DNA of 64,000 bases, from contig NC_083294.1 of assembly GCF_963506605.1 (NCBI RefSeq), positions 12,090,001-12,154,000 on the forward strand. The letters run 5' to 3'. Within the stretch, counting starts at the first letter, position 1, and every line of letters begins with the position of its first letter. A program made the translations under genes and the position numbers. This DNA is from Zootoca vivipara (taxonomy: Eukaryota). Below are positions 5,426 to 51,124 of this stretch, in pieces. Below the pieces are notes generated by a model. It did not search any database. It was not told the origin of the DNA and saw only the letters and a program-made list of their open reading frames with translations.

Positions 5426-8768
<3,343 letters not shown>

Positions 8769-33965: not shown

Positions 33966-34556
33966 TCACCCCCACCCCCAAAAGAACTGCCTGGTCCAAA
34001 AGATGGAGAAGATGAGTAGTAAAGTCACGCTTAAGATGACAGCCATCAGGTAGGTGAAAATCCGGAGCTGGGGGTTGCAGGCACACACCCACATGGGGGA
34101 GCGGTGGCGGTTGGGCAGGGTTGTGGCGGCAGTGGTGGTGCTAGCCGGGCGGCTTTGCTCACGGTAGCTCTCAATGCTGGGATCTGTCACTGGGCCCAGG
34201 TCCAAGGTGTAGACCCTGGGCTGGCGGAGGAAGTACCTGCTCTTGCGCTGCTCCTTCAAGCACAGCTGCCGGCCTTCCAGGATGATGTGGTTGGGCTCCA
34301 GGCGCAGCAGGCGCAAGATGGCCTCATTGGTGGGCAGCTCAGTGACGGGCTGGTCGGAAGGGAGGACGGTAAGGTGGCGGCAGAGTGGGCACTGCAAGCG
34401 GTTCTGGGCCGGGGACACCAAGCTGAGATGAGCCAGGCACTCAATGCAGAAGGAATGTTGGCACTGAAGGACCTTGGGGGTGCGGAAAGTGTTGTCGTAA
34501 GGGTTCCAGCAGATGGGGCATTCAGCCTCCTGCCCCTGGACCTGCTTCTCAGCCAT
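33966..34556 (-). CDS. RNF183: RING E3 ubiquitin ligase RNF183, single coding exon, 196 aa
   Basis: MAEKQ...ECPICWNPYDNTFRTPKVLQCQHSFCIECLAHL...LQCPLCR (RING-HC) with a C-terminal TM helix IFTYLMAVILSVTLLLIFSIFW. Splice acceptor ttttttag just upstream (34566-34564). Adjacent to PRPF4, as in human 9q32. Confidence 0.93.
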   Translation of the reverse strand: MAEKQVQGQEAECPICWNPYDNTFRTPKVLQCQHSFCIECLAHLSLVSPAQNRLQCPLCRHLTVLPSDQPVTELPTNEAILRLLRLEPNHIILEGRQLCLKEQRKSRYFLRQPRVYTLDLGPVTDPSIESYREQSRPASTTTAATTLPNRHRSPMWVCACNPQLRIFTYLMAVILSVTLLLIFSIFWTRQFFWGWG

Positions 34557-36182
34557 GGGGAGACTAAAAAACAAGGGCAGGTGTAACCATATAGCAGCAT
34601 CAATGTAGTGGAACCTTTGGCCCACGAGATGGAATGTTTGGTTTGCCATGGGGCCATGCTTGCTGAGACTGATGGGAGTTGTAGTTCTTCAGCATTGGTG
34701 GGGGGGGCAAAGGTTCCCAACATCTGGCTTTTACAGCATCAGCAAATGCAAAGAGAGAGGTCCTCTGCCCAAGGGAGTTTGCAGTATGAAGTTTAAGAGT
34801 GGAAGCGAGCCCTTCTCTTGCAAAGCAATTGATAAGGCAAAGGTGGGAAAATAAACATCCACATCAGAACAGCCTGCTGGATCAGGCCAATGGCAATCTA
34901 GTCCAGCATCCTCTTCTCACAGCAGCCAACCAGAAATACACAAGAAACCTTGAGCATAGACATCATGGCTAGTAGCCATTGATAGCCTTATCAGAGGAAG
35001 CACACAGAGGGTTGTGCTTTAATGGTAGAGCCACTGCCAGTCGGTCTAGAGAAGCTAGTCAAAGGATCAGTGCTCTTGACTCTTATCATAAAGGCCTTTA
35101 TGGTCCTACGCCCTACCCACCCCTGCAAAAAACAACAACACCCAAAACAAACCTACCTTGCCTTGAAAAGCAGGAGATGTGGGCAGTGTGGCCTCATTCT
35201 AACTCAATTCCATCCAGGATCAATGTTTCTTTTCACACCGCCCAGAAGTCTGATGCATTCTTCTTCTGCTCCCTTATTCTTTCTTAAGATTGGTGAGCAA
35301 GTGTGGGCTTGCAGCTGGATCTGAGCTGGTCCAAAATGAAGAGAGAGAGAGCCTAGGCAGGAAGATGCTTCCTTTGCAGGTGCTGCTAAACCAAAGGTGT
35401 TCTCTCTCCTCCTCCCATTCTCAGGGGACTTTGTCCCTTAGGCAGAGCTTGGCGTTTTCTTCTGTCAGGTTGGTAAGCAGCTGTTGTTTACTACCAGGGC
35501 CTGGCAGCCAAGGTGAGAGAACTGGTGGAAGGCTGGCAGGGAAATCCTCGGGCTGCCTTGGAAGTTAGGAAGCCCCAAGCGGACCTATTTTTCAGCACTG
35601 CTGCCATTGATTTTAGGTAACTTGGTTTAGGAGCATAGGAAAACAATGAGGCATGCTCCAAGAGGCAGAGCAGCATTCGGCCTAAAATCCCAGCACAATT
35701 CTCAAAAGTAGTAAGACATTTATTTTTTCTCCTTTACACCTTCCACCGCCTCCTCCTAGTACTGAATTGTAGCTTCTGAACCTTGGTGGGAGGGCAAAAA
35801 CTTTCCCCCTTTTACATTGCAATGGTGGAAACAGGTGTAAATGTATTATTTAACATCACTAATATACTGCTTGATTGTGCTAAAACCTCTAAACAATACA
35901 TCCCCCCATTTTTAAAAAACGTTTTTTTTAAAAAAGCATTAAAATTAATTAAAATTAAACATGTTAACATCTACATGCCCATATCAACTTTTTGATACAA
36001 AGATGTTTTTAGCAGGCACTGAAAAGAGTACTACAAAGATTTCCCACCTGATTTCAATCGGCAAGGAGTTCCAAAGTGTGTGTGCTGCCACAGAAAAAGT
36101 TTGGCTTTTTGCAAGTGTGGAACAAGTATTCTGTGGAACCAGTAACAGTGCTCAAGTGGGCACATATGAGATGAGGTGATCC

Positions 36183-38016: not shown

Positions 38017-38974
38017 TCAGCAAACAAAACCACGTTCCAAATACTGTTCAGACCTTACCAGGAGGACAAGGAAACTCCCATTGCAAGTGACCAATTTATC
38101 TACTGCCCTATCAGCAAAGAGAACAGTATTCAAAATATCAGACACCAGTCTGGGAGTGAGGACTTGGAGGAGGAACTCTTCCCGTGCTCGTTTCATACCA
38201 TTCAGCAGCACAGCAAGGTTGATCTTGGTGGCCAACTGTTTCCCATCCACAGAGCTCCATGTGGACACCATTATGCCATAAGGTACAAGACTTTGCCCCA
38301 CATAAATCTCTGCAGCAGAGATATCACAGGTCCCATTTTCCAGGATGCCCCTCCAGGGAAGCCAGACACTACTTTGCTCGAGATATCGAAGTTTCACGGC
38401 ACTCTCCTCCGTCAGGAGGGAAAGAGTGGCTTTGGTGAGGCACAGAAGTGTGCTTCTTGCATCACCCAGCCCAGCGGTGACCAGGACCCAAGGTTTGTCA
38501 GGATTTGTCCCTCCCAGCTGGCCACGTATGTATTGCTGCAGAATCTGCCACGTAGTTTCTGGCTGGTTTGGGAAGAGAAGGCGAAGGAGTCCAAGCCGGC
38601 TTTTGGGCAATTGATTCTTGGTGGGGCTCGCAGCCCTGTAGTCACCCAAGGATAAGTGGCTGTTACCATGATGGAGCAGGATCATAGAAACAAAGACAAA
38701 CACAAGGGCCAAAAAGGCAGCAAGGGAAACAGAAGGGAGGAAATCAGAGTCTTGCAGGTCTGGTGCAGGAGTTTCGGTAGAGGCAGAAGGAGCTGATCTT
38801 TCTCTGGCCTCCACCTCTGCACGCTTCCAGGGTTCACAACACGGTTCTTCAGGGAAGTTTCTACAGTCAAACAAGTAGGTCTCCTCATCATCAACGTCTT
38901 TCCACATCCCTTGCATGTCTTGGTTTTCTAGCACAGAGAAAGAAAGGAAAGCTGAGAAGCAGGGTGTTTAAAAC

Positions 38975-39013
<39 letters not shown>

Positions 39014-39766
39014 CTCTGAACGAGGTAGTAGGGACCTGAAATAGTATGGCTGTACCATTTCACTCCGAAGGCAGAGGGTCACATTCTGGAATGTTCCCTG
39101 CAGGTCCAAATCCAACATAGCTGGAACTTCTCTGCCTGCTGTGCTAGCTTTTTATTTTTTGGGGTATAGAATGAATTCATTTTATTTTATTTATTTATTT
39201 TCATACAGAGAAGCATAAATAACCACCCCAGAGGCCGCCCTTGTCTGCAGTTTTTGTCCCCTTAAAACTCTACCCCTTCTTTGAGAGCCAGTGTGATGTA
39301 GTGGTTAGAATGCTAAACTAGGACCTGGGAGACCAGAGTTCATTTCTCCACTCGCTGGGTCGCCTTGGGCCCAGTCACAAACTCTTAGCCTTACCTACCA
39401 CACAGGGTCGTTGTGAGGATAAAAGCAGCAGCGGGAGGAGAAGTGTGTATGCCACCTTGACCTCCCTGGAGGAAAGGTGGGATATAAATGTAATAAGCAA
39501 ATGAATAAAATAAATGACGTTGCAAGTGCAGGTTTATCATTAGACAGAGCTAACAATGGCTATTTGCCTCTACCTAGAAGCCATATTTGGTAGCGGCCAT
39601 CGCAACACCTTGTGGTTGTGAGTTTCCAAAGGTTTATTGCACATCACATGCAAAAGATAATGCCAAGAAGTTGCCATACCTACACCAGAGACTTACTTTC
39701 AGCTTGGAGTGCAGACATGTCTTGAGCCGTTCTCTGGACAGAGGATTGTTTCCCACAAATCTTCAT
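38017..39766 (-). CDS. Divergent torsin-1A-interacting protein (LAP1/LULL1, TOR1AIP)-like type II membrane protein; proposed complement(join(38017..38927,39697..39766)), ~326 aa
   Basis: 911-nt terminal exon after a strong polypyrimidine-TAG acceptor. TM helix VSLAAFLALVFVFVSMILL, then LRLLFPNQPETTWQ...NPDKPWVLVTAGLGDARSTLLCL...DKL...LVLLVRSEQYLERGFVC*, resembling the recalled LAP1/LULL1 luminal domain (FPGQ..LW...NP.EP...TLKCL...DKL...LVLPVQP...RGICL). The upstream exon ends with a GTAAGT donor in matching phase 1. ATTAAA lies ~97 nt after the stop. Confidence 0.7.
38977..39012. repeat. (CA)n microsatellite just upstream of the acceptor of the TOR1AIP-like terminal exon
   Basis: About 18 units; reads (TG)n on the sense strand of that gene. 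Confidence 0.9.
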
Positions 39767-40267: not shown

Positions 40268-40331
40268 CCTGGCGTGCTCTGGCCCATGGGGTCACGAAGA
40301 GTCGGACACGACTAAACGACTAAACAACAAC
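40268..40331 (+). mobile_element. Bov-B/RTE LINE 3' tail fragment
   Basis: cctggcgtgctctggcccatggggtcacgaagagtcggacacgactaaacgactaaacaacaac. Confidence 0.75.
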
Positions 40332-43300
40332 AGACCTTTAAGATATACCCTTGTTGTGAGTTTGAAAACTTCCCTCTTCCTCTGGCATGGACTGACAGCA
40401 AGTAAGAAGGCAGGTAGGTTGGGGGTTGGCTGAGGGCATGGTGAGATTGGTGGGGGCAGTGCTCCATATGTCCAATGGACCAGCCACTACTAACCCTCCA
40501 AGGAAGCTGATCAATGGGCACACTCAGTCCTAACTGGGAAGTATTGGGGGGCAGGGAGCTTCCTCAATTTAGGATTTCTGCTCCCCTCCCCAAATATTTT
40601 TGTATTTCTGCAAACAATGGGGTTCCTCCGAACTTGCTTGGGGATACAGCTTCTGCTTTCTTGTGTCTGGGTGTTGTCATGTGGCTATAAAAGGATTGGC
40701 ACTTGACTCTGAACTTTGGAAATAAAGGAAATGTGAGCACTGAAATGCTTATCAACTCTTATGGTCTGTTATGAGCCATTAAAAAAAAAAGGCCTGGCAG
40801 CTTTTATAGGATAATCTCAGAGAAAGGTGCTATTTTGTCTACAAAGTGATCAATAAACATTGGCCACTCCAGTGAGGTGGGACAAAGTAGGCTAAAGGCA
40901 AAGTTTTAAAGAGGGAGAAAAATGAAGAGCTCCCTGCTGAGTTTCCACGTTTGCTAGTGTATATATATTCGATCACTTTAAAGGCAATAGTTCTTCAGCT
41001 GCATGCACACTTTTGCTCTCAGACAAACACAGATCCCACATCTAACACCAGTGCTACACGCCACTCCCATCTCCATGAGCTGTAAGAGATTCCTGGGGCT
41101 CCAGGTGTTTAGCCAAGGTTGTGTCTCCATTGGGAAGATCGAGGCACAGCAGAGGCTAGTATCTTTAATAAATATGGCTGATTAACACATATTTACACCT
41201 AGATATCTGCCATGGAGGGGTTGCTGAACATTATACCCCAGGAGTGTCTCTCATCATTGTCCCTCTCATATCTTCAGCAAACTTGGGTCCAAAACAGCAG
41301 CCAGTCATGGCTCCTGGCCTCCAGCCAGTGCCAAAGTGGTTCTGACCTCTACACACACACCCCATATAAAGTTCTGGCCTCCCCAGAAGCTCATGGAGAA
41401 CTAGCCTTTGCTCTCCTTCCCAGCACACCTCCTGCCAAAACCCCAAGCCTCCTGTGAAATTACACTTTTCCCTTTCACCTCACCGCCCCCTCCCTGTCAC
41501 TCCTGTTTTGCACAGACCTGAGAACCTTATTTGATGTATAGTACCTGGCCACTGTTTCATAATGGTTTGCATTCAACCAGCCAGGCCAGACTGGTTTGCA
41601 TAAGCTGGCCCATGGATTCCTTTTCTGACACAGTTCTGTAGCCTGCATTTCCCATTGGGTTTGGGGGAGGGGGGGTCTCCCCCTGACCAAACTCTTAACA
41701 ATATTCACCTAACCATCTTATTGGGAAGCGCTGTAGCTTAGCAGAAGAGCACCACCATTTTGCATGTAGGAAGTCCCAGGTTCAGTCCTTGGAACCTCAG
41801 GTAGGGCTGGGAGACACCTCTGCCTGAAACTCTGGATTGCTGCTACCGGTCAGTACTCGGGCTAGAGCAGGTATCCTGTGTTCCTGGAAAGCGCCATAGC
41901 TCAGTGGTAGAGCATCTGCTTTGCATGCGGAAGGTGCCAGGTTCTCCAATGGCATCTCCTAGTAGAGTTGAGAGACCCTTCTAAGTGAGGCTCTGGAGAG
42001 CTTCTGCTGGTCAGAGTAGACAGGGCAAGCTATATAAACCCTATCTTCATTCTTGAGATGTTTAGACTCGCCTTTACTTCATGCTTTGCTGTATGCGCAA
42101 AAGTTGGCAAAAGTTCTCAGATTCCTGGCACTTTCTAGAATTGCACGAAACATAAAATGGTTCGTTCCCCACTCCCTCTCCCCAAAAAAGTTACAGGTAT
42201 TATAGAACCAAGGAGAAAAAGTCTTGAAAAGGAGCAAATACTTACCACCCTTTCCACGTACAAATGGGGTACACTCCACTCCCCCATGAAAAGGTTCCCT
42301 TGTTTCAATTCAAGTTGTTCACTGCTCTGTCAACTTGGCACCACCAACTTCCCTGCAGACACCTCTCATCTGCATACAGGTAGACAGTTATCACAGGTAT
42401 GCAACTAACAGAAGATCTCCTCCCTCCAAGGCACAGTTTTCCCCAGGTCCTAAAGCTAGTACCTCTTAGTTTTGGGCGTAACACATAATGAGTGCATACA
42501 GACCAGGGCTTAATTCATTTGTACAGGTTCTGCAGAGAAGTCACACCTGGCTTGATCTCATCCCAGCAACATCAGAAGCTGCCTTACAGTACTTCAGGCA
42601 TATTGGTCCATCTAGGTCCACACTGATTAGCAGAGATTCTCCTAGGTTTTGAGCAGGAATCTCTCTTATCCTGAACTGGAGATGCTGAGGATTTAACCTA
42701 GGACCTTTTCAAATGTGAGACATGTACTCTGCTACTAAGATACATGCAACTGAACACACTACAGCTAAGTCCTACATGCAATCTATTATGCACTATGTGT
42801 GTCCCCCACTACTGTGCTCCTGTGCAAATTTTTTAAATGTGTTATAAACAAAAAATAAGGGCATGAAACATTTCCCAGCATGACAACAAAGCCTCCTGCA
42901 TATACAATATATGATGCTGCCATTTAGAAAACAGGAACCAGCAATCCTAATGGCAAATTCCTGCTGTCTGTGGATTGAGAGAGGCACTCTGGACATGCTC
43001 AAAAACCTCCCTCCACCTATTGTAACTAGCAGGTATGGATAGACAAACAAACCTATCAATTTTTGTTTCTCATTCTCTCCCTTTCCATTTTAAGTCTCCC
43101 TTTCCACATTGGTTTGTGATTTATTTATTTTTACGTCCTCCTGAAAATTCAGCAGCTTTTTGATGTAAATTATTGCTAATATAAACAGTTTGCTATGCAA
43201 TTTTGCCTGATATACACATTTTTGCAAAGCAATTTTCCCTTCATCTTTGTATCTTGTTTCCATTAATATAGACATCTTTATGCACACTTCAAGCCAATAT

Positions 43301-46521: not shown

Positions 46522-49500
46522 CTGGATCCCCGCATCAAAGAGCCGCTCCTCTGCAGGGAGCCTGGGGAAGATTATCAAACCTTCAAGGCGAAAGATGCTC
46601 AGCTGGCGGAGAAAGAATATTACAGGTAAAGTTTCTGCCTCTGCTAATTTCATCTCCCTTTTCCCCTTTCTTATGCCTAAAGGTACACCTTTCTTGCTTA
46701 CAACTCTTCCCCCTTAAATCCCACTTTCCTGGAATACTTTTGGCTTAAGCTGCTAGTCCTCATCCCGCACCAGATCCACACCATACTTTTAAAGCATATC
46801 TAACACATGTTTAAAGCACATGGGCTCACCCTCCCCCAAAGAATCCTGGGTACTGTAGTTTGTAAGGGTGTTGGGAATTGTGGCTCTGTGGAGGGAAAAC
46901 TATAGGTCCCAGGATTCTTGGTGGCCAGGGAGCTGACAGTTCCTGTACAAAACATCATGTACTTTGATAATGTGTTGTTTGTGTTGCTGTGATCCAGGAG
47001 TGGGAGAAAACATTTTCAGCCCGAGGCAAGGCATTCACTTCTGGCAAGGGTTACATGCCAGCGATAGCCAGATTTGCCAGTGGGCATAGCTGCCAAGTTT
47101 TCCCTTTTCTCGCGAGGAAGCCTATTCAGCACAAGGGAATTTCCCTTAAAAAAAGGGAGAACTTGGCAGCTATGCCAGTGGGCAAAGTAACACATGTAAA
47201 GCAAGAAGCCTGATAATATTGCAGATATTAATATTAGTTACAGGTAGGTAGCCGTGTTGGTCTGAGTCGAAGCAAAAATAAAAAAATTCCTTCAGTAGCA
47301 CCTTAAAGACCAACTAAGTTTTTATTTTGGTATGAGCTTTCGTGTGCAGTGTGCAGTGTGCATGCACACGAAAGCTCATACCAAAATAAAAACTTAGTTG
47401 GTCTTTAAGGTGCTACTGAAGGAATTTTTTTAGATATTAATATTGTGCAGTTGGAAGCAATTGGATGCATTAAAGCTAACTCCTCTTGGAATAAAACACT
47501 GTCCAGTCCCATAAGTATTGTTCAAAGCTTTACTAACCAAATCTTCTTTCAAAACAGGTACAAAAACATTAATGATACATCCAAAATAATTCCTTAGTCA
47601 TGTGCATGTTCCAGCACAGGTTTGGCTTCTTATAAAATATGAAACCAAGGGTCTGTCTCTCCCACAACCTCCATTACATTACAGCCTGGGGCTGTTTTCT
47701 CTTTATCAGAGACCTCATTACCACATCCTTTGTTATTGGCTGCTTAAGAACAATGTCTCAACTCACACAAAACAGAGACCCGCAGATTAAAGTATGCATA
47801 AAAGGTCATTCTATTCTATCTCTTTCATGTGATTTAAGTCAGTCACATGATAAATCAGAAGACATCAACAGTTAATTATCAACCTGCTAGAGAGCTCCTG
47901 TTGCTCTTCTTTAGTTTCAGTGGAAATTTCCAGTTCAACCCTTAGTAATATACATACAGGCATTCACAATTTCAGTGTCAATTAAACAAGTAACCTATAC
48001 TTAACACATAAGAGTTCAAGGACACATTTCAGCCAAGAAAAAGCACTAAAAGAGGTTGTGGCTTAGGAGGGGTGCGTGGCCTGGAGAATGTTCAGGGGGC
48101 CATACAGAGAAACTTGGAGGGTTGGATTCAGCCTGCATGGAGGGCAGGTCCATGGAGTTTAGGACGATAAGATGGGGCTGCAAAAGAGGAAAGCTCCATT
48201 CAACGATAGAACCAGTACCTGGCAACCCTGGGCAAGTTGCCAGGAGCCTGTGGTTGGTTGCAATATCATCAAGTAAATGATGTATTCTCAAAGGATAAAA
48301 AATAGGCTTTGAAGACAAAAGGTCTAAATTTCAAATAGAATTGTTGGAAGGTAGAATTAAATTGTTGTCAAAAATGTATGATTTGCTGTTAGAATGGTAT
48401 ACAAAGGATGAATTGACAAAAGATGTGATGATAAAATGGGCAAAATACTTTGGGCATAATATCGAATATGATGCGTGGTTGAAATTATGGAATCAAACAT
48501 TGAAGTTCACGGCATGTACCGCCCTGGAAGATGATGTATAGATGGTATTTAACACCAGCAAAGTTAGCTAAAATGTATAGGATGAGTAATAAAATGTGCT
48601 GGAAATGTAATGAGAAGGAGGGAGAGTTTTATCATATGTGGTGGAAGTGCGAAAAAGTTAAAAGATTTTGGTAATTGGTATATAATGAACTGAAAAAGAT
48701 TTTTAAGTATACCTTTCCCAAAAAACCTGAGGTTTTTGGGAAAGGTATACTTAGGACTTATTGGACAAGAGATTGCAAAGGAAGACTATATATATATACC
48801 GTGTTTCTCATATTTTAAGGCATCCCCAAAAAATAAGCCATGACAGGATTTCTAAGGGTTGGTGAAAAATAAGACATACCCCGAAAATAAGCCATGTCGT
48901 GTAGCCCTGACCGAGCGAGAGGCGAAGGCGCGGGACCCAGCAGGAGCTCCCTGCCTGCTTCCCCGAGCCGTCGCGCATCGGGGGACAGAGCCGAAGATCG
49001 GCGGGCGCTCCTTGCTGGGCTTGACAAGCCCGGCAAACAGCGCCCGCCGATCTTCGGACCTGTCCTGTGTGACAGGCGGGGGTGGGGGGGGAAGCGGAGA
49101 TCGTTCTCCGCTCTCCCCCCACCCCCGCCTGTCACCAAAGATCGGCGGGCGCTGCTTGCTGGGCTTGACAAGCCCGGCAAACAGCGCCCGCCGATCTTCG
49201 GACCTGTCCTGTGTGACAGGCGGGGGTGGGGGGGGAAGCGGAGATCGTTCTCCGCTCTCCCCCCACCCCCGCCTGTCACCAAAGATCGGCGGGCGCTGTT
49301 TGCTGGGCTTGACAAGCCCGGCAAACAGCGCCCGCCGATCTTCGGCCCTGTCCTGTGTGACAGGCGGGGGTGGGGGGGGAAGCGGAGATCGTTCTCCGCT
49401 CTCCCCCCACCCCCGCCTGTCACCAAAGATCGGCGGGCGCTGTTTGCTGGGCTTGACAAGCCCGGCAAACAGCGCCCGCCGATCTTCGGACCTGTCCTGT

Positions 49501-51124
49501 GTGACAGGCGGGGGTGGGGGGGGAAGCGGAGATCGTTCTCCGCTCTCCCCCCACCCCCGCCTGTCACCAAAGATCGGCGGGCGCTGTTTGCTGGGCTTGA
49601 CAAGCCCGGCAAACAGCGCCCGCCGATCTTCGGACCTGTCCTGTGTGACAGGCGGGGGTGGGGGGGGAAGCGGAGATCGTTCTCCGCTCTCCCCCCACCC
49701 CCTCCTGTCACCAAAGATCGGCGGGCGCTCCTTGCTGGGCTTGACAAGCCCGGCAAACAGCGCCCGCCGATCTTCGGACCTGTCCTGTGTGGCAGGCGGG
49801 GGTGGGGGAGAAGCGGAGATCGTGCTCCGCTCTCCCCCCATCCCCGCCTGTCACCGAAGATCGGCGGGCGCTCCTAGCTGGGCTTGACAAGCCCGGCAAA
49901 CAGCGCCCGCCGACCTGTGCTGTGTGACAGGCGGGGGTGGGGGAGAAGCGGAGATCGTTCTCCGCTCTCCGCCCACCCCCGCCTGTCACCGAAGATCGGC
50001 GGGCGCTCCTAGCTGGGCTTGACAAGTCCGGCAAACAGCGCCCGCCAACCTGTGCTGTGTGACAGGCGGGGGTGGGGGGGAAGCGGAGATCGTTCTCCGC
50101 TCTCCGCCCACCCCCGCCTGTCACCGAAGATCGGCGGGCGCTGTTTGCTGGGCTTGACAAGCCCGGCAAACAGCGCCCGCCGATCTTCGGACCTGTCCTG
50201 TGTGACAGGCGGGGGTGGGGGGGGAAGCGGAGATCGTTCTCCGCTCTCCCCCCACCCCCGCCTGTCACCAAAGATCGGCGGGCGCTCCTTGCTGGGCTTG
50301 ACAAGCCCGGCAAACAGCGCCCGCCGATCTTCGGACCTGTCCTGTGTGACAGGCGGGGGTGGGGGGGAAGCGGAGATCGTTCTCCGCTCTCCCCCCACCC
50401 CCGCCTGTCACCAAAGATCGGCGGGCGCTCCTTGCTGGGCTTGACAAGCCCGGCAAACAGCGCCCGCCGATCTTCGGACCTGTCCTGTGTGACAGGCGGG
50501 GGTGGGGGGGAAGCGGAGATCGTGCTCCGCTCTCCCCCCACCCCCGCCTGTCACCAAAGATCGGCGGGCGCTGTTTGCTGGGCTTGACAAGCCCGGCAAA
50601 CAGCGCCCGCCGATCTTCGGCCCTGTGCTGTGTGACAGGCGGGGGTGGGGGGGAAGTGGAGATCGTTCTCCGCTCTTCCCCCATCCCCGCCTGTCACCGA
50701 AGATCGGCGGTCGCTCCTAGCTGGGCTTGACAAGCCCGGCAAACAGCGCCCGCCGACCTGTGCTGTGTGACAGGCGGGGGTGGGGGAGAAGCGGAGATCG
50801 TTCTCCGCTCTCCCCCCATCCCCGCCTGTCACCGAAGATCGGCGGGCGCTCCTAGCTGGGCTTGACAAGCCCGGCAAACAGCGCCCGCCGACCTGTGCTG
50901 TGTGACAGGCGGGGGTGGGGGGAAGCGGAGATCGTTCTCCGCTCTCCGCCCACCCCCGCCTGTCACCGAAGATCGGCGGGCGCTGTTTGCTGGGCTTGAC
51001 AAGCCCGGCAAACAGCGCCCGCGTGCACTTTATTAAAAAATAAGACATCCCTCAAAAATAAGCCATGTCGTGTTTTTTTGAAGAAAAAATTAATATAAGA
51101 CATGACTTATAATATGAGAAACAC

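Follow-up and report, generated by a model that had tools for sequence, protein, structure and literature searches.

Torsin ATPases have no arginine finger of their own and, in the literature found here, depend on exactly two activators, LAP1 (TOR1AIP1) and LULL1 (TOR1AIP2); failure to bind these activators underlies DYT1 dystonia (PMC4358337, PMC4999309). Both activators are single-pass type II membrane proteins with a C-terminal luminal domain, a nucleotide-free AAA+-like domain without Walker motifs, described as an atypical AAA+ fold with a five-stranded parallel sheet flanked by helices (PMC4358337). The domain supplies the arginine finger, LAP1 R563 or LULL1 R449. R563 is strictly conserved in LAP1, and mutation of the finger in LAP1/LULL1 lowers ATPase stimulation but does not abolish it (PMC4358337). 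A disulfide joins a Cys of helix alpha1 to a C-terminal Cys (LAP1 C424-C582, LULL1 C310-C468; PMC4358337, PMC4999309), and the catalytic interface, which in LULL1 contacts torsinA through R276, K283, E385, R412, E415, E416 and R419, is the conserved surface of these proteins (PMC4999309). Literature searches for TOR1AIP3, for a LAP1-like cofactor without the finger, and for the LOC identifiers of six members of the family reported below found no description of a third member.

We analyzed a window of 64,000 nucleotides of Zootoca vivipara (GCF_963506605.1, NC_083294.1, positions 12,090,001 to 12,154,000), which contains no N and in which a first-pass annotation had pointed to an unrecognised, highly divergent LAP1/LULL1-like gene at 38017-39766 that appears to lack the arginine finger. 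Our analysis confirmed this observation: an intact two-exon gene is present on the minus strand, with the exon structure exactly as proposed. The ATG lies at 39766, the last base of exon 1 at 39697 is followed by GTAAGT, the acceptor AG is at 38929-38928, and exon 2 starts at 38927 within a split AAA (Lys) codon, followed by 302 further codons and a TGA. The open reading frame is intact at 38017..38934 (-), with 305 codons when read from an in-frame GTG inside the intron. The gene is not unannotated, since NCBI holds a 326-aa model for it, named only 'uncharacterized protein LOC118083896' (P0001 in the following), and this NCBI product is the spliced sequence used here; what was unrecognised is the family link. 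By tblastn, residues 1-23 of P0001 were placed at 39766-39698 (100%) and residues 24-326 at 38928-38020 (99.7%), with no other copy in the window. A second weak profile hit at 5721-5951 (+) (E 0.002) was not supported by any family member in tblastn and we take it as chance. The features of the locus are as follows.

39698..39766 (-), coding part of exon 1: 23 codons, MKICGKQSSVQRTAQDMSALQAE, plus the first base of the split Lys codon at 39697; the start conserved across species is the second ATG, at 39718-39716 (M17 of P0001, kept in 87% of family rows)
38928..39696 (-), intron of 769 nt (GT at 39696-39695, AG at 38929-38928), holding an (AC)18 microsatellite at 38976-39012 and SINE-like sequence
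38017..38927 (-), terminal coding exon: 2 bases of the split codon, 302 codons and the TGA stop at 38019-38017
38731..38748 (-), SDFLPS motif next to the membrane (P0001 residues 84-89)
38668..38730 (-), predicted membrane helix (P0001 residues 90-110)
38020..38667 (-), predicted luminal domain of 216 aa, distantly homologous to the LAP1/LULL1 AAA+-like torsin-activator domain
38548..38574 (-), FPNQPETTW motif (P0001 residues 142-150), aligned with LULL1 FPGQSSFLW; Q145 and W150 are near-invariant in the family
38440..38451 (-), TLLC (P0001 residues 183-186); Cys186 aligns with LAP1 C424 and LULL1 C310
38329..38337 (-), NGT sequon; an N-x-T sequon is kept at this site in most squamates (NGT, NGS, NRT, NKT)
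38074..38082 (-), NGS sequon, whose Asn (38080-38082; P0001 N306) sits in the column of the arginine finger
38020..38022 (-), C-terminal Cys, the last residue, in the aligned region of LAP1 C582 / LULL1 C468
37915..37920 (-), ATTAAA, a possible polyadenylation signal about 100 nt after the stop codon, read directly from the sequence

The remaining features described in the first-pass annotation were also present: an acidic N-terminal tail (18 D+E against 10 K+R in 83 residues), one membrane helix, and a C-terminal part of about 216 aa with the motifs FPNQ...W, NPDKP, TLLCL and LVLLV, ending LERGFVC. Homologs ranged from E 1e-76 (gecko) through 6.6e-14 (elephant shark) to 3.1e-04 (bichir, the weakest hit listed), which is far more than chance, and with more than 30 intact orthologs a pseudogene or chance reading frame was rejected. 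Short Logan contigs were considered as possible evidence of spliced transcripts but were rejected, as their N-termini ('MLK...') look like reading-frame calls that start in the end of the intron.

The gene belongs to a single-copy family found in squamates, turtles, crocodilians, amphibians, lungfish, non-teleost ray-finned fish (bichir/reedfish, sturgeon, gar) and cartilaginous fish, whereas no bird, mammal or teleost member was found. Every member is labelled 'uncharacterized' and none carries a precomputed Pfam domain. A maximum-likelihood tree of 28 members follows the species tree, as expected for orthologs of a lineage as old as jawed vertebrates. A family-profile search of a set of 5.8 billion proteins, limited to 8000 candidates, returned only 11 proteins and missed many known members, and therefore says nothing about LAP1/LULL1, or about birds and mammals; a search with the SDFLPS motif and membrane-helix segment alone found only the query itself, so that no remote members were reached in this way.

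To characterize the relation to LAP1 and LULL1, we first searched Pfam and PDB with the Zootoca protein alone, which gave only sub-threshold hits: LULL1 at E 0.01, and Pfam LAP1_C (PF05609) at 16.4-17.3 bits (E 0.003-0.005) against a gathering score of 26.8 bits. LAP1_C was nevertheless the top Pfam family, although only 4 of 31 family members matched it at E < 1, the best at 5.7e-4, and none reached the gathering score. A squamate-only profile was weaker still (E 0.39), and significance came only with the wider family. When searched against 177,635 PDB sequences, a whole-family profile (A2) hit LAP1 (4tvs_A, E 2e-5, profile 100-303 against chain residues 8-228 of 231) and LULL1 (5j1s_B, E 2.5e-4); a second whole-family profile (A3) gave 1.2e-4 and 9e-4, and a profile built from non-squamates only (A4) gave 2e-3 for each. 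In all three, LAP1 and LULL1 were the top two and the only sequences below E 0.1. It is conceivable that this similarity is convergent or due to chance and that the family consists of unrelated small type II membrane proteins, given the sub-threshold Pfam scores and the structural results below. However, we consider this very unlikely, because three profiles, one without any squamate sequence, converge on the same two proteins, the motifs are in the same order (FPxQ..W, TLxC, PxG, VLxVxPE, G-x-C end), and the predicted membrane topology and the cysteine pair agree.

The AlphaFold2 models, of the full-length protein and of the luminal domain, were mediocre (pLDDT 65-66). Foldseek found no global match to LAP1/LULL1 but a local one to LULL1 over the first 63-88 luminal columns (probability 1.00 and rmsd 1.8 A over 63 columns; probability 0.99 over 88 columns; TM 0.18-0.30), so that the AAA+-like fold is supported only for the first third of the domain and is not confirmed as a whole. 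The middle part was modelled at pLDDT 50-70 as three long antiparallel strands where LAP1 has beta3-alpha3-beta4; either the model is wrong there or the domain has been rebuilt. The top Foldseek hits (START/Bet v 1-like, SecB, inositol dehydrogenases) had rmsd of 11-17 A and TM below 0.26, and we reject them as noise.

The column of LAP1 R563 holds Asn of the NGS sequon in Zootoca, H or Q in snakes, A in turtles and crocodilians, and Arg only in gar, 1 of 29 informative members. In the profile alignment the family lacks about 10 residues just before the finger (LAP1 'NHMDPDKLNG'), and the DKL = DKL pairing proposed in the first-pass annotation is therefore not what the alignment gives; the alignment around the finger, which contains this gap, is uncertain. 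Given this gap, it could be argued that the protein is still a torsin activator using a different arginine: Arg lies within 1 residue of the column in 7 of 29 members (gar at the column; three turtles, two crocodilians and one squamate one residue further on), and many tetrapod members keep an Arg about 9 residues upstream (DRAVD / GRVP). We regard this as very unlikely, since no Arg or Lys column is conserved across the family in this segment, Zootoca, snakes, amphibians and cartilaginous fish have none near the column, and the other contact residues are also lost. Of these, LULL1 R276 and K283 align with I and G in Zootoca, and LAP1 K526, E529, E530 and R533 align with the family consensus n, s, s, s; the comparison did not include LULL1 E385.

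The cysteine pair of LAP1/LULL1 has a counterpart in the family. The TLLC Cys and the terminal Cys are each present in 87% of rows, and many members have exactly these two luminal Cys, although ray-finned fish have the first Cys about 13 residues later and Sceloporus lacks the last one. Every member has at least one N-x-S/T sequon on the C-terminal side of the single hydrophobic helix (AlphaFold2 residues 86-110), consistent with a predicted type II topology.

Conservation was concentrated elsewhere. All eight invariant columns (S84, D85, S89, L92, A93, L96, F100 and V103) lie in the SDFLPS motif, where S84, D85 and S89 are invariant in 23 species spanning jawed vertebrates, and in the membrane helix, where the invariant residues and near-invariant L107 share one helix face (a conservation moment reached by 10 of 10000 shuffles). 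Mean pairwise identity was 53% in that segment against 23-38% in the luminal parts. This reversed pattern points to an unknown partner in the membrane.

The first-pass annotation had interpreted the gene as a third family member that may bind torsins without activating them, as a decoy or inhibitor, or that has a torsin-independent role, and this interpretation is only partly supported by our results. The homology, the predicted topology, the order of the cysteine pair and terminal motifs, the absence of a conserved Arg from the finger column and the age of the lineage are in its favor, while its status as a third member, as opposed to extreme divergence of LAP1 or LULL1, rests indirectly on the distribution and tree of the family and on general knowledge, without LAP1 or LULL1 of the same species in the comparison. 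A decoy would dock on the ATP-bound face of torsins as LAP1/LULL1 do without supplying an arginine, holding torsin in an inactive, ATP-bound state or competing with the activators. The N-terminal helices, including the alpha0 contact helix of LULL1, are indeed the best-matching and best-modelled part. However, the charged contact residues are not kept, an N-x-T sequon falls in the helix aligned with contact helix alpha4 in many members, a sequon sits on the finger column itself in Zootoca and Sceloporus, where a glycan would hinder docking, and luminal conservation is low. The decoy idea thus gains nothing here and remains unlikely, weakly favored at best.

The explanation we favor, with reasonable though not full confidence, is that this is the Zootoca copy of an unnamed, fast-evolving, single-copy gene family of jawed vertebrates, a distant paralog of LAP1 and LULL1. 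In this view the product is a single-pass type II membrane glycoprotein of the endoplasmic reticulum or nuclear envelope, with a short acidic tail outside the lumen, the invariant SDFLPS motif, a membrane helix with one invariant face, and a luminal domain of about 215 aa that derives from the torsin-activator domain and is probably stapled by the same disulfide. Having lost the finger and the charged residues with which LULL1 holds torsinA, it most likely cannot stimulate torsin ATP hydrolysis in the canonical way, and we infer that it acts mainly through its membrane helix and the adjacent motif, by pairing with itself or with another membrane protein, the luminal domain being a degenerate scaffold. 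The gene structure, the family and its spread, the homology and the absence of a conserved Arg in the aligned column come directly from our analysis, whereas topology, localization, disulfide, glycosylation, expression, any binding to torsins, the loss of activator function and the membrane-based role are inferences from sequence.

It is possible, although we put this forward only tentatively, that the family is an ancient third branch of torsin cofactors, kept as a single copy from cartilaginous fish to reptiles, which has given up torsin activation and works either as a built-in negative regulator of torsins or in a torsin-independent process, through the invariant helix face and an SDF motif. 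Its non-detection in mammals, birds and teleosts suggests loss there, and the two-cofactor picture of torsin regulation drawn from mammals would then be a reduced state. A natural relative that keeps the scaffold but has lost the finger and the contact residues shows which parts of the domain are structural and which serve torsin, offers a candidate modulator that can be tested in axolotl, gar or lizards, and raises the question of why mammals, birds and teleosts appear to do without it.

Among the described systems, LULL1 (PDB 5J1S chain B) is the best single-sequence hit and the best local structural match, sharing FP-x-Q...W, NP..P and TL.C (C310). The C-terminal strand and G-x-C end of the family were aligned only with LAP1, the matching end of LULL1 with C468 being known from PMC4999309. 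In contrast to LULL1, the family has no Arg at R449 as a conserved feature and does not keep R276, K283, R412, E415, E416 and R419, its cytoplasmic tail is much shorter (about 60-85 aa conserved length, against more than 200), about 10 residues before the finger are missing, the middle of the domain is not recognisably similar, and the strongest constraint is on the membrane helix. LAP1 (PDB 4TVS) is the best profile hit, aligned over nearly its whole length, with the order alpha-alpha-beta1-alpha1(Cys)-beta2 ... alpha4 ... last strand ... C-terminal Cys in common. However, the strictly conserved R563 and the 'most conserved' C496 of LAP1 (PMC4358337) have no counterpart in the family, there is no long lamin- or chromatin-binding nucleoplasmic domain, and Pfam LAP1_C is not reached. 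Degenerate partners of AAA+ ATPases in general are nucleotide-free AAA+-like domains that complete a neighbor's active site, and the domain described here likewise appears to derive from an AAA+-like fold without Walker motifs; known examples such as LAP1 and LULL1 matter because they donate the finger, whereas this family appears to have lost that last catalytic contribution as well.

To characterize the locus, we first examined the coding potential of the minus strand, where an ORF of 305 codons runs from 38934 to 38017. The true exon starts inside this ORF, and an additional short coding exon lies upstream. The NCBI product "uncharacterized protein LOC118083896 [Zootoca vivipara]" (P0001, 326 aa), which was the spliced protein used in our analysis, maps back to exactly these two exons: residues 1-23 match at 100% and residues 24-326 at 99.7%, with the split Lys codon being the single difference. 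Nothing else in the window matches this protein. The gene model therefore already exists, although without a name, family or Pfam domain. The sequence contains no N, and the following features were identified in the gene and around it:

39697-39766 (-), upstream coding exon, from the ATG at 39766 to 39697, followed by GTAAGT
38017-38927 (-), terminal coding exon, starting after an AG at 38929-38928
about 100 nt after the stop codon, an ATTAAA
38976-39012, an (AC)18 microsatellite within the only coding intron of the gene
about 39290-39500, a stretch of the same intron that by eye looks like a squamate SINE, with a similar-looking element at about 40270-40330
41890-41970 (+), about 2 kb upstream of the gene, an Rfam tRNA match just above threshold (32.4 bits against 29) that ARAGORN does not call, probably a tRNA-derived SINE head
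33966-34649 (-), about 3.4 kb downstream of the gene on the same strand, a single-exon ORF of 227 aa with a C3HC4 RING finger (residues 43-92; Pfam E 1e-8; nearest solved RINGs TRIM32 and TRIM2) and a C-terminal membrane helix, which looks like a membrane-anchored RING E3 ligase
48994-51022, a GC-rich tandem array of a 144-bp unit (14.4 copies, 95% matches), which explains the overlapping ORFs of 277-342 codons on both strands there and a spurious SMN YG-box Pfam hit

To determine whether the gene belongs to a wider family, we conducted a word-indexed search and an exhaustive phmmer search of 1.84 billion representative proteins, which found 22 cluster representatives with E <= 0.001. These include squamates (gecko, Sceloporus, Pogona, python and several snakes), turtles and crocodilians, lungfish, axolotl, a caecilian and four frogs, elephant shark and sawfish, and sturgeons, gar, bichir and reedfish. 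All of them are labelled "uncharacterized" or "hypothetical", and none has a precomputed Pfam domain. No bird, mammal or teleost protein appeared in these searches. Crocodilians score 1.9e-38 and lungfish 1.1e-24, so annotated bird or mammal copies of similar divergence should have been seen; we interpret this as probable loss, although unannotated copies are not excluded. An ML tree of 28 members, built without LAP1 and LULL1 sequences of the same species, reproduces the species tree (cartilaginous fish; ray-finned fish; lungfish; amphibians; turtles with crocodilians; squamates), which is the pattern expected of single-copy orthologues since the ancestor of jawed vertebrates. The branches are long, with Zootoca being 57% identical to gecko, 40% to turtle and 27% to elephant shark.

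The relation to LAP1 and LULL1 was examined by sequence and profile searches. With the Zootoca protein alone the evidence is only suggestive: Pfam LAP1_C is the top family, but at 16.4 bits against a cut-off of 26.8, while LULL1 (5J1S_B) scores E 0.01 and LAP1 (4TVS_A) E 1.2. In contrast, a profile of 23 family members found only these two among 177,635 PDB sequences, LAP1 at E 2e-5 (profile positions 100 to 303 aligned with chain residues 8 to 228 of 231) and LULL1 at E 2.5e-4. A 31-sequence profile gives 1.2e-4 and 9e-4, respectively, and a profile built only from non-squamates gives 2e-3 for both, with no other PDB sequence below E 0.1. The shared elements are in the same order, i.e., FP-x-Q...W, TL-x-C in helix alpha1, P-x-G after the Walker-B-like strand, the last strand VL-x-V-x-PE, and a G-x-(x)-C end. 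We consider homology highly likely and a chance resemblance unlikely, although by Pfam's own rule no member belongs to LAP1_C. Within the window, the family profile also gave a weak match to a 50-residue piece at 5721-5951 (+) (E 0.002 among 1782 six-frame pieces); no family member matches it in tblastn, and it is probably due to chance.

AlphaFold2 monomer models based on the family alignment gave a pLDDT of 65 for the full length and 66 (pTM 0.67) for the luminal domain alone. The well-modelled parts are the membrane helix, the first part of the luminal domain (two helices, strand, helix, strand) and the last strand. Foldseek against the PDB found LULL1 with a probability of 0.99-1.00, but only over 63-88 columns (rmsd 1.8 A over 63); there is no global match, and the hits ranked above LULL1 are noise. 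LAP1 has beta3-alpha3-beta4 within a five-stranded parallel sheet (PMC4358337), whereas the model has three long antiparallel strands there, at a pLDDT of 50-70. Either the alignment is too shallow for a good model, or the middle of the domain has been rebuilt.

Based on the first-pass annotation, which had reported an intact LAP1/LULL1-like terminal exon that appeared to lack the arginine finger, we compared the finger region across the family. In the profile alignment, LAP1 "LWSRI-SHLVLPVQPE" pairs with Zootoca "VTCNG-SFLVLLVRSE", so that R563 pairs with the Asn of the NGS sequon (38080-38082). Every member was then anchored without gaps on the conserved Glu of the PE motif.

Residue in the finger column, by group
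Lacertid, iguanian, python: N
Snakes: H or Q
Turtles, crocodilians: A (with Arg one residue later)
Amphibians, lungfish, cartilaginous fish, sturgeon: S, V, M, G, E or I
Gar: R

What had been observed in the lizard thus holds, and the absence is a trait of the whole family rather than a quirk of one species, with Arg in this column only in gar. It should be considered that the family lacks about 10 residues just upstream, that the Arg one residue later in turtles and crocodilians lies within alignment error, and that many tetrapods keep an Arg about 9 residues upstream. The use of such an alternative arginine remains possible but is unlikely. The LULL1 residues that make the charge contacts with torsinA are R276, K283, E385, R412, E415, E416 and R419 (PMC4999309), and where these were mapped they are not kept. 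R276 and K283 pair with I and G in Zootoca, the LAP1 equivalents K526, E529, E530 and R533 pair with the consensus n, s, s, s, and the "most conserved" C496 of LAP1 pairs with a hydrophobic residue.

The conservation of the family itself has a different distribution. All eight invariant columns of the 23-species alignment are S84, D85, S89, L92, A93, L96, F100 and V103, which make up the SDFLPS motif next to the membrane and the first turns of the membrane helix. The invariant membrane residues fall within a 100-degree arc of the helix, a conservation moment reached by only 10 of 10000 shuffles.

Mean pairwise identity by region
N-terminal tail: 20%
SDFLPS motif and membrane helix: 53%
Luminal parts: 23-38%

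In the lumen, the Cys of TLLC and the terminal Cys are each present in 87% of rows. Many members have exactly two luminal cysteines, and every member has at least one luminal sequon. This fits a disulfide like LAP1 C424-C582 and an ER-luminal, glycosylated domain. The exceptions include the ray-finned fish members (sturgeon, gar, bichir), which lack the TLLC cysteine but have a single other luminal Cys about 13 residues further along the same helix, and Sceloporus, which lacks the terminal Cys. In addition, many non-squamate members carry an N-[LVF]-T sequon in the helix aligned with the LULL1 contact helix alpha4.

The interpretation given in the first-pass annotation was only partly supported: the reading as a finger-less relative of LAP1 and LULL1 agrees with our results, while its suggestion that the protein may act as a torsin decoy or inhibitor is not the role that we favour. 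Given that the contact residues are lost as well and that the constraint sits in the membrane, we rank a membrane-based role, through self-pairing or another membrane partner, above the decoy model; both roles remain hypotheses. The gene structure, the family and the profile alignments are results of the analysis, whereas the topology, the glycosylation, the disulfide, the inability to activate torsins and any role in the membrane are inferred from sequence and models.

Full-text literature searches on TOR1AIP3, on LAP1/LULL1 paralogues, on a finger-less cofactor and on the LOC identifiers of six members found no paper that describes such a gene, and the reviews and structure papers that we read speak of two activators. 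In comparison with LAP1 and LULL1, the best reading of this family is a third, finger-less branch of the same kind, which would be a type II glycoprotein of the ER or nuclear envelope whose luminal domain is a degenerate copy of the torsin-activator domain, and which would not activate torsins in the canonical way.
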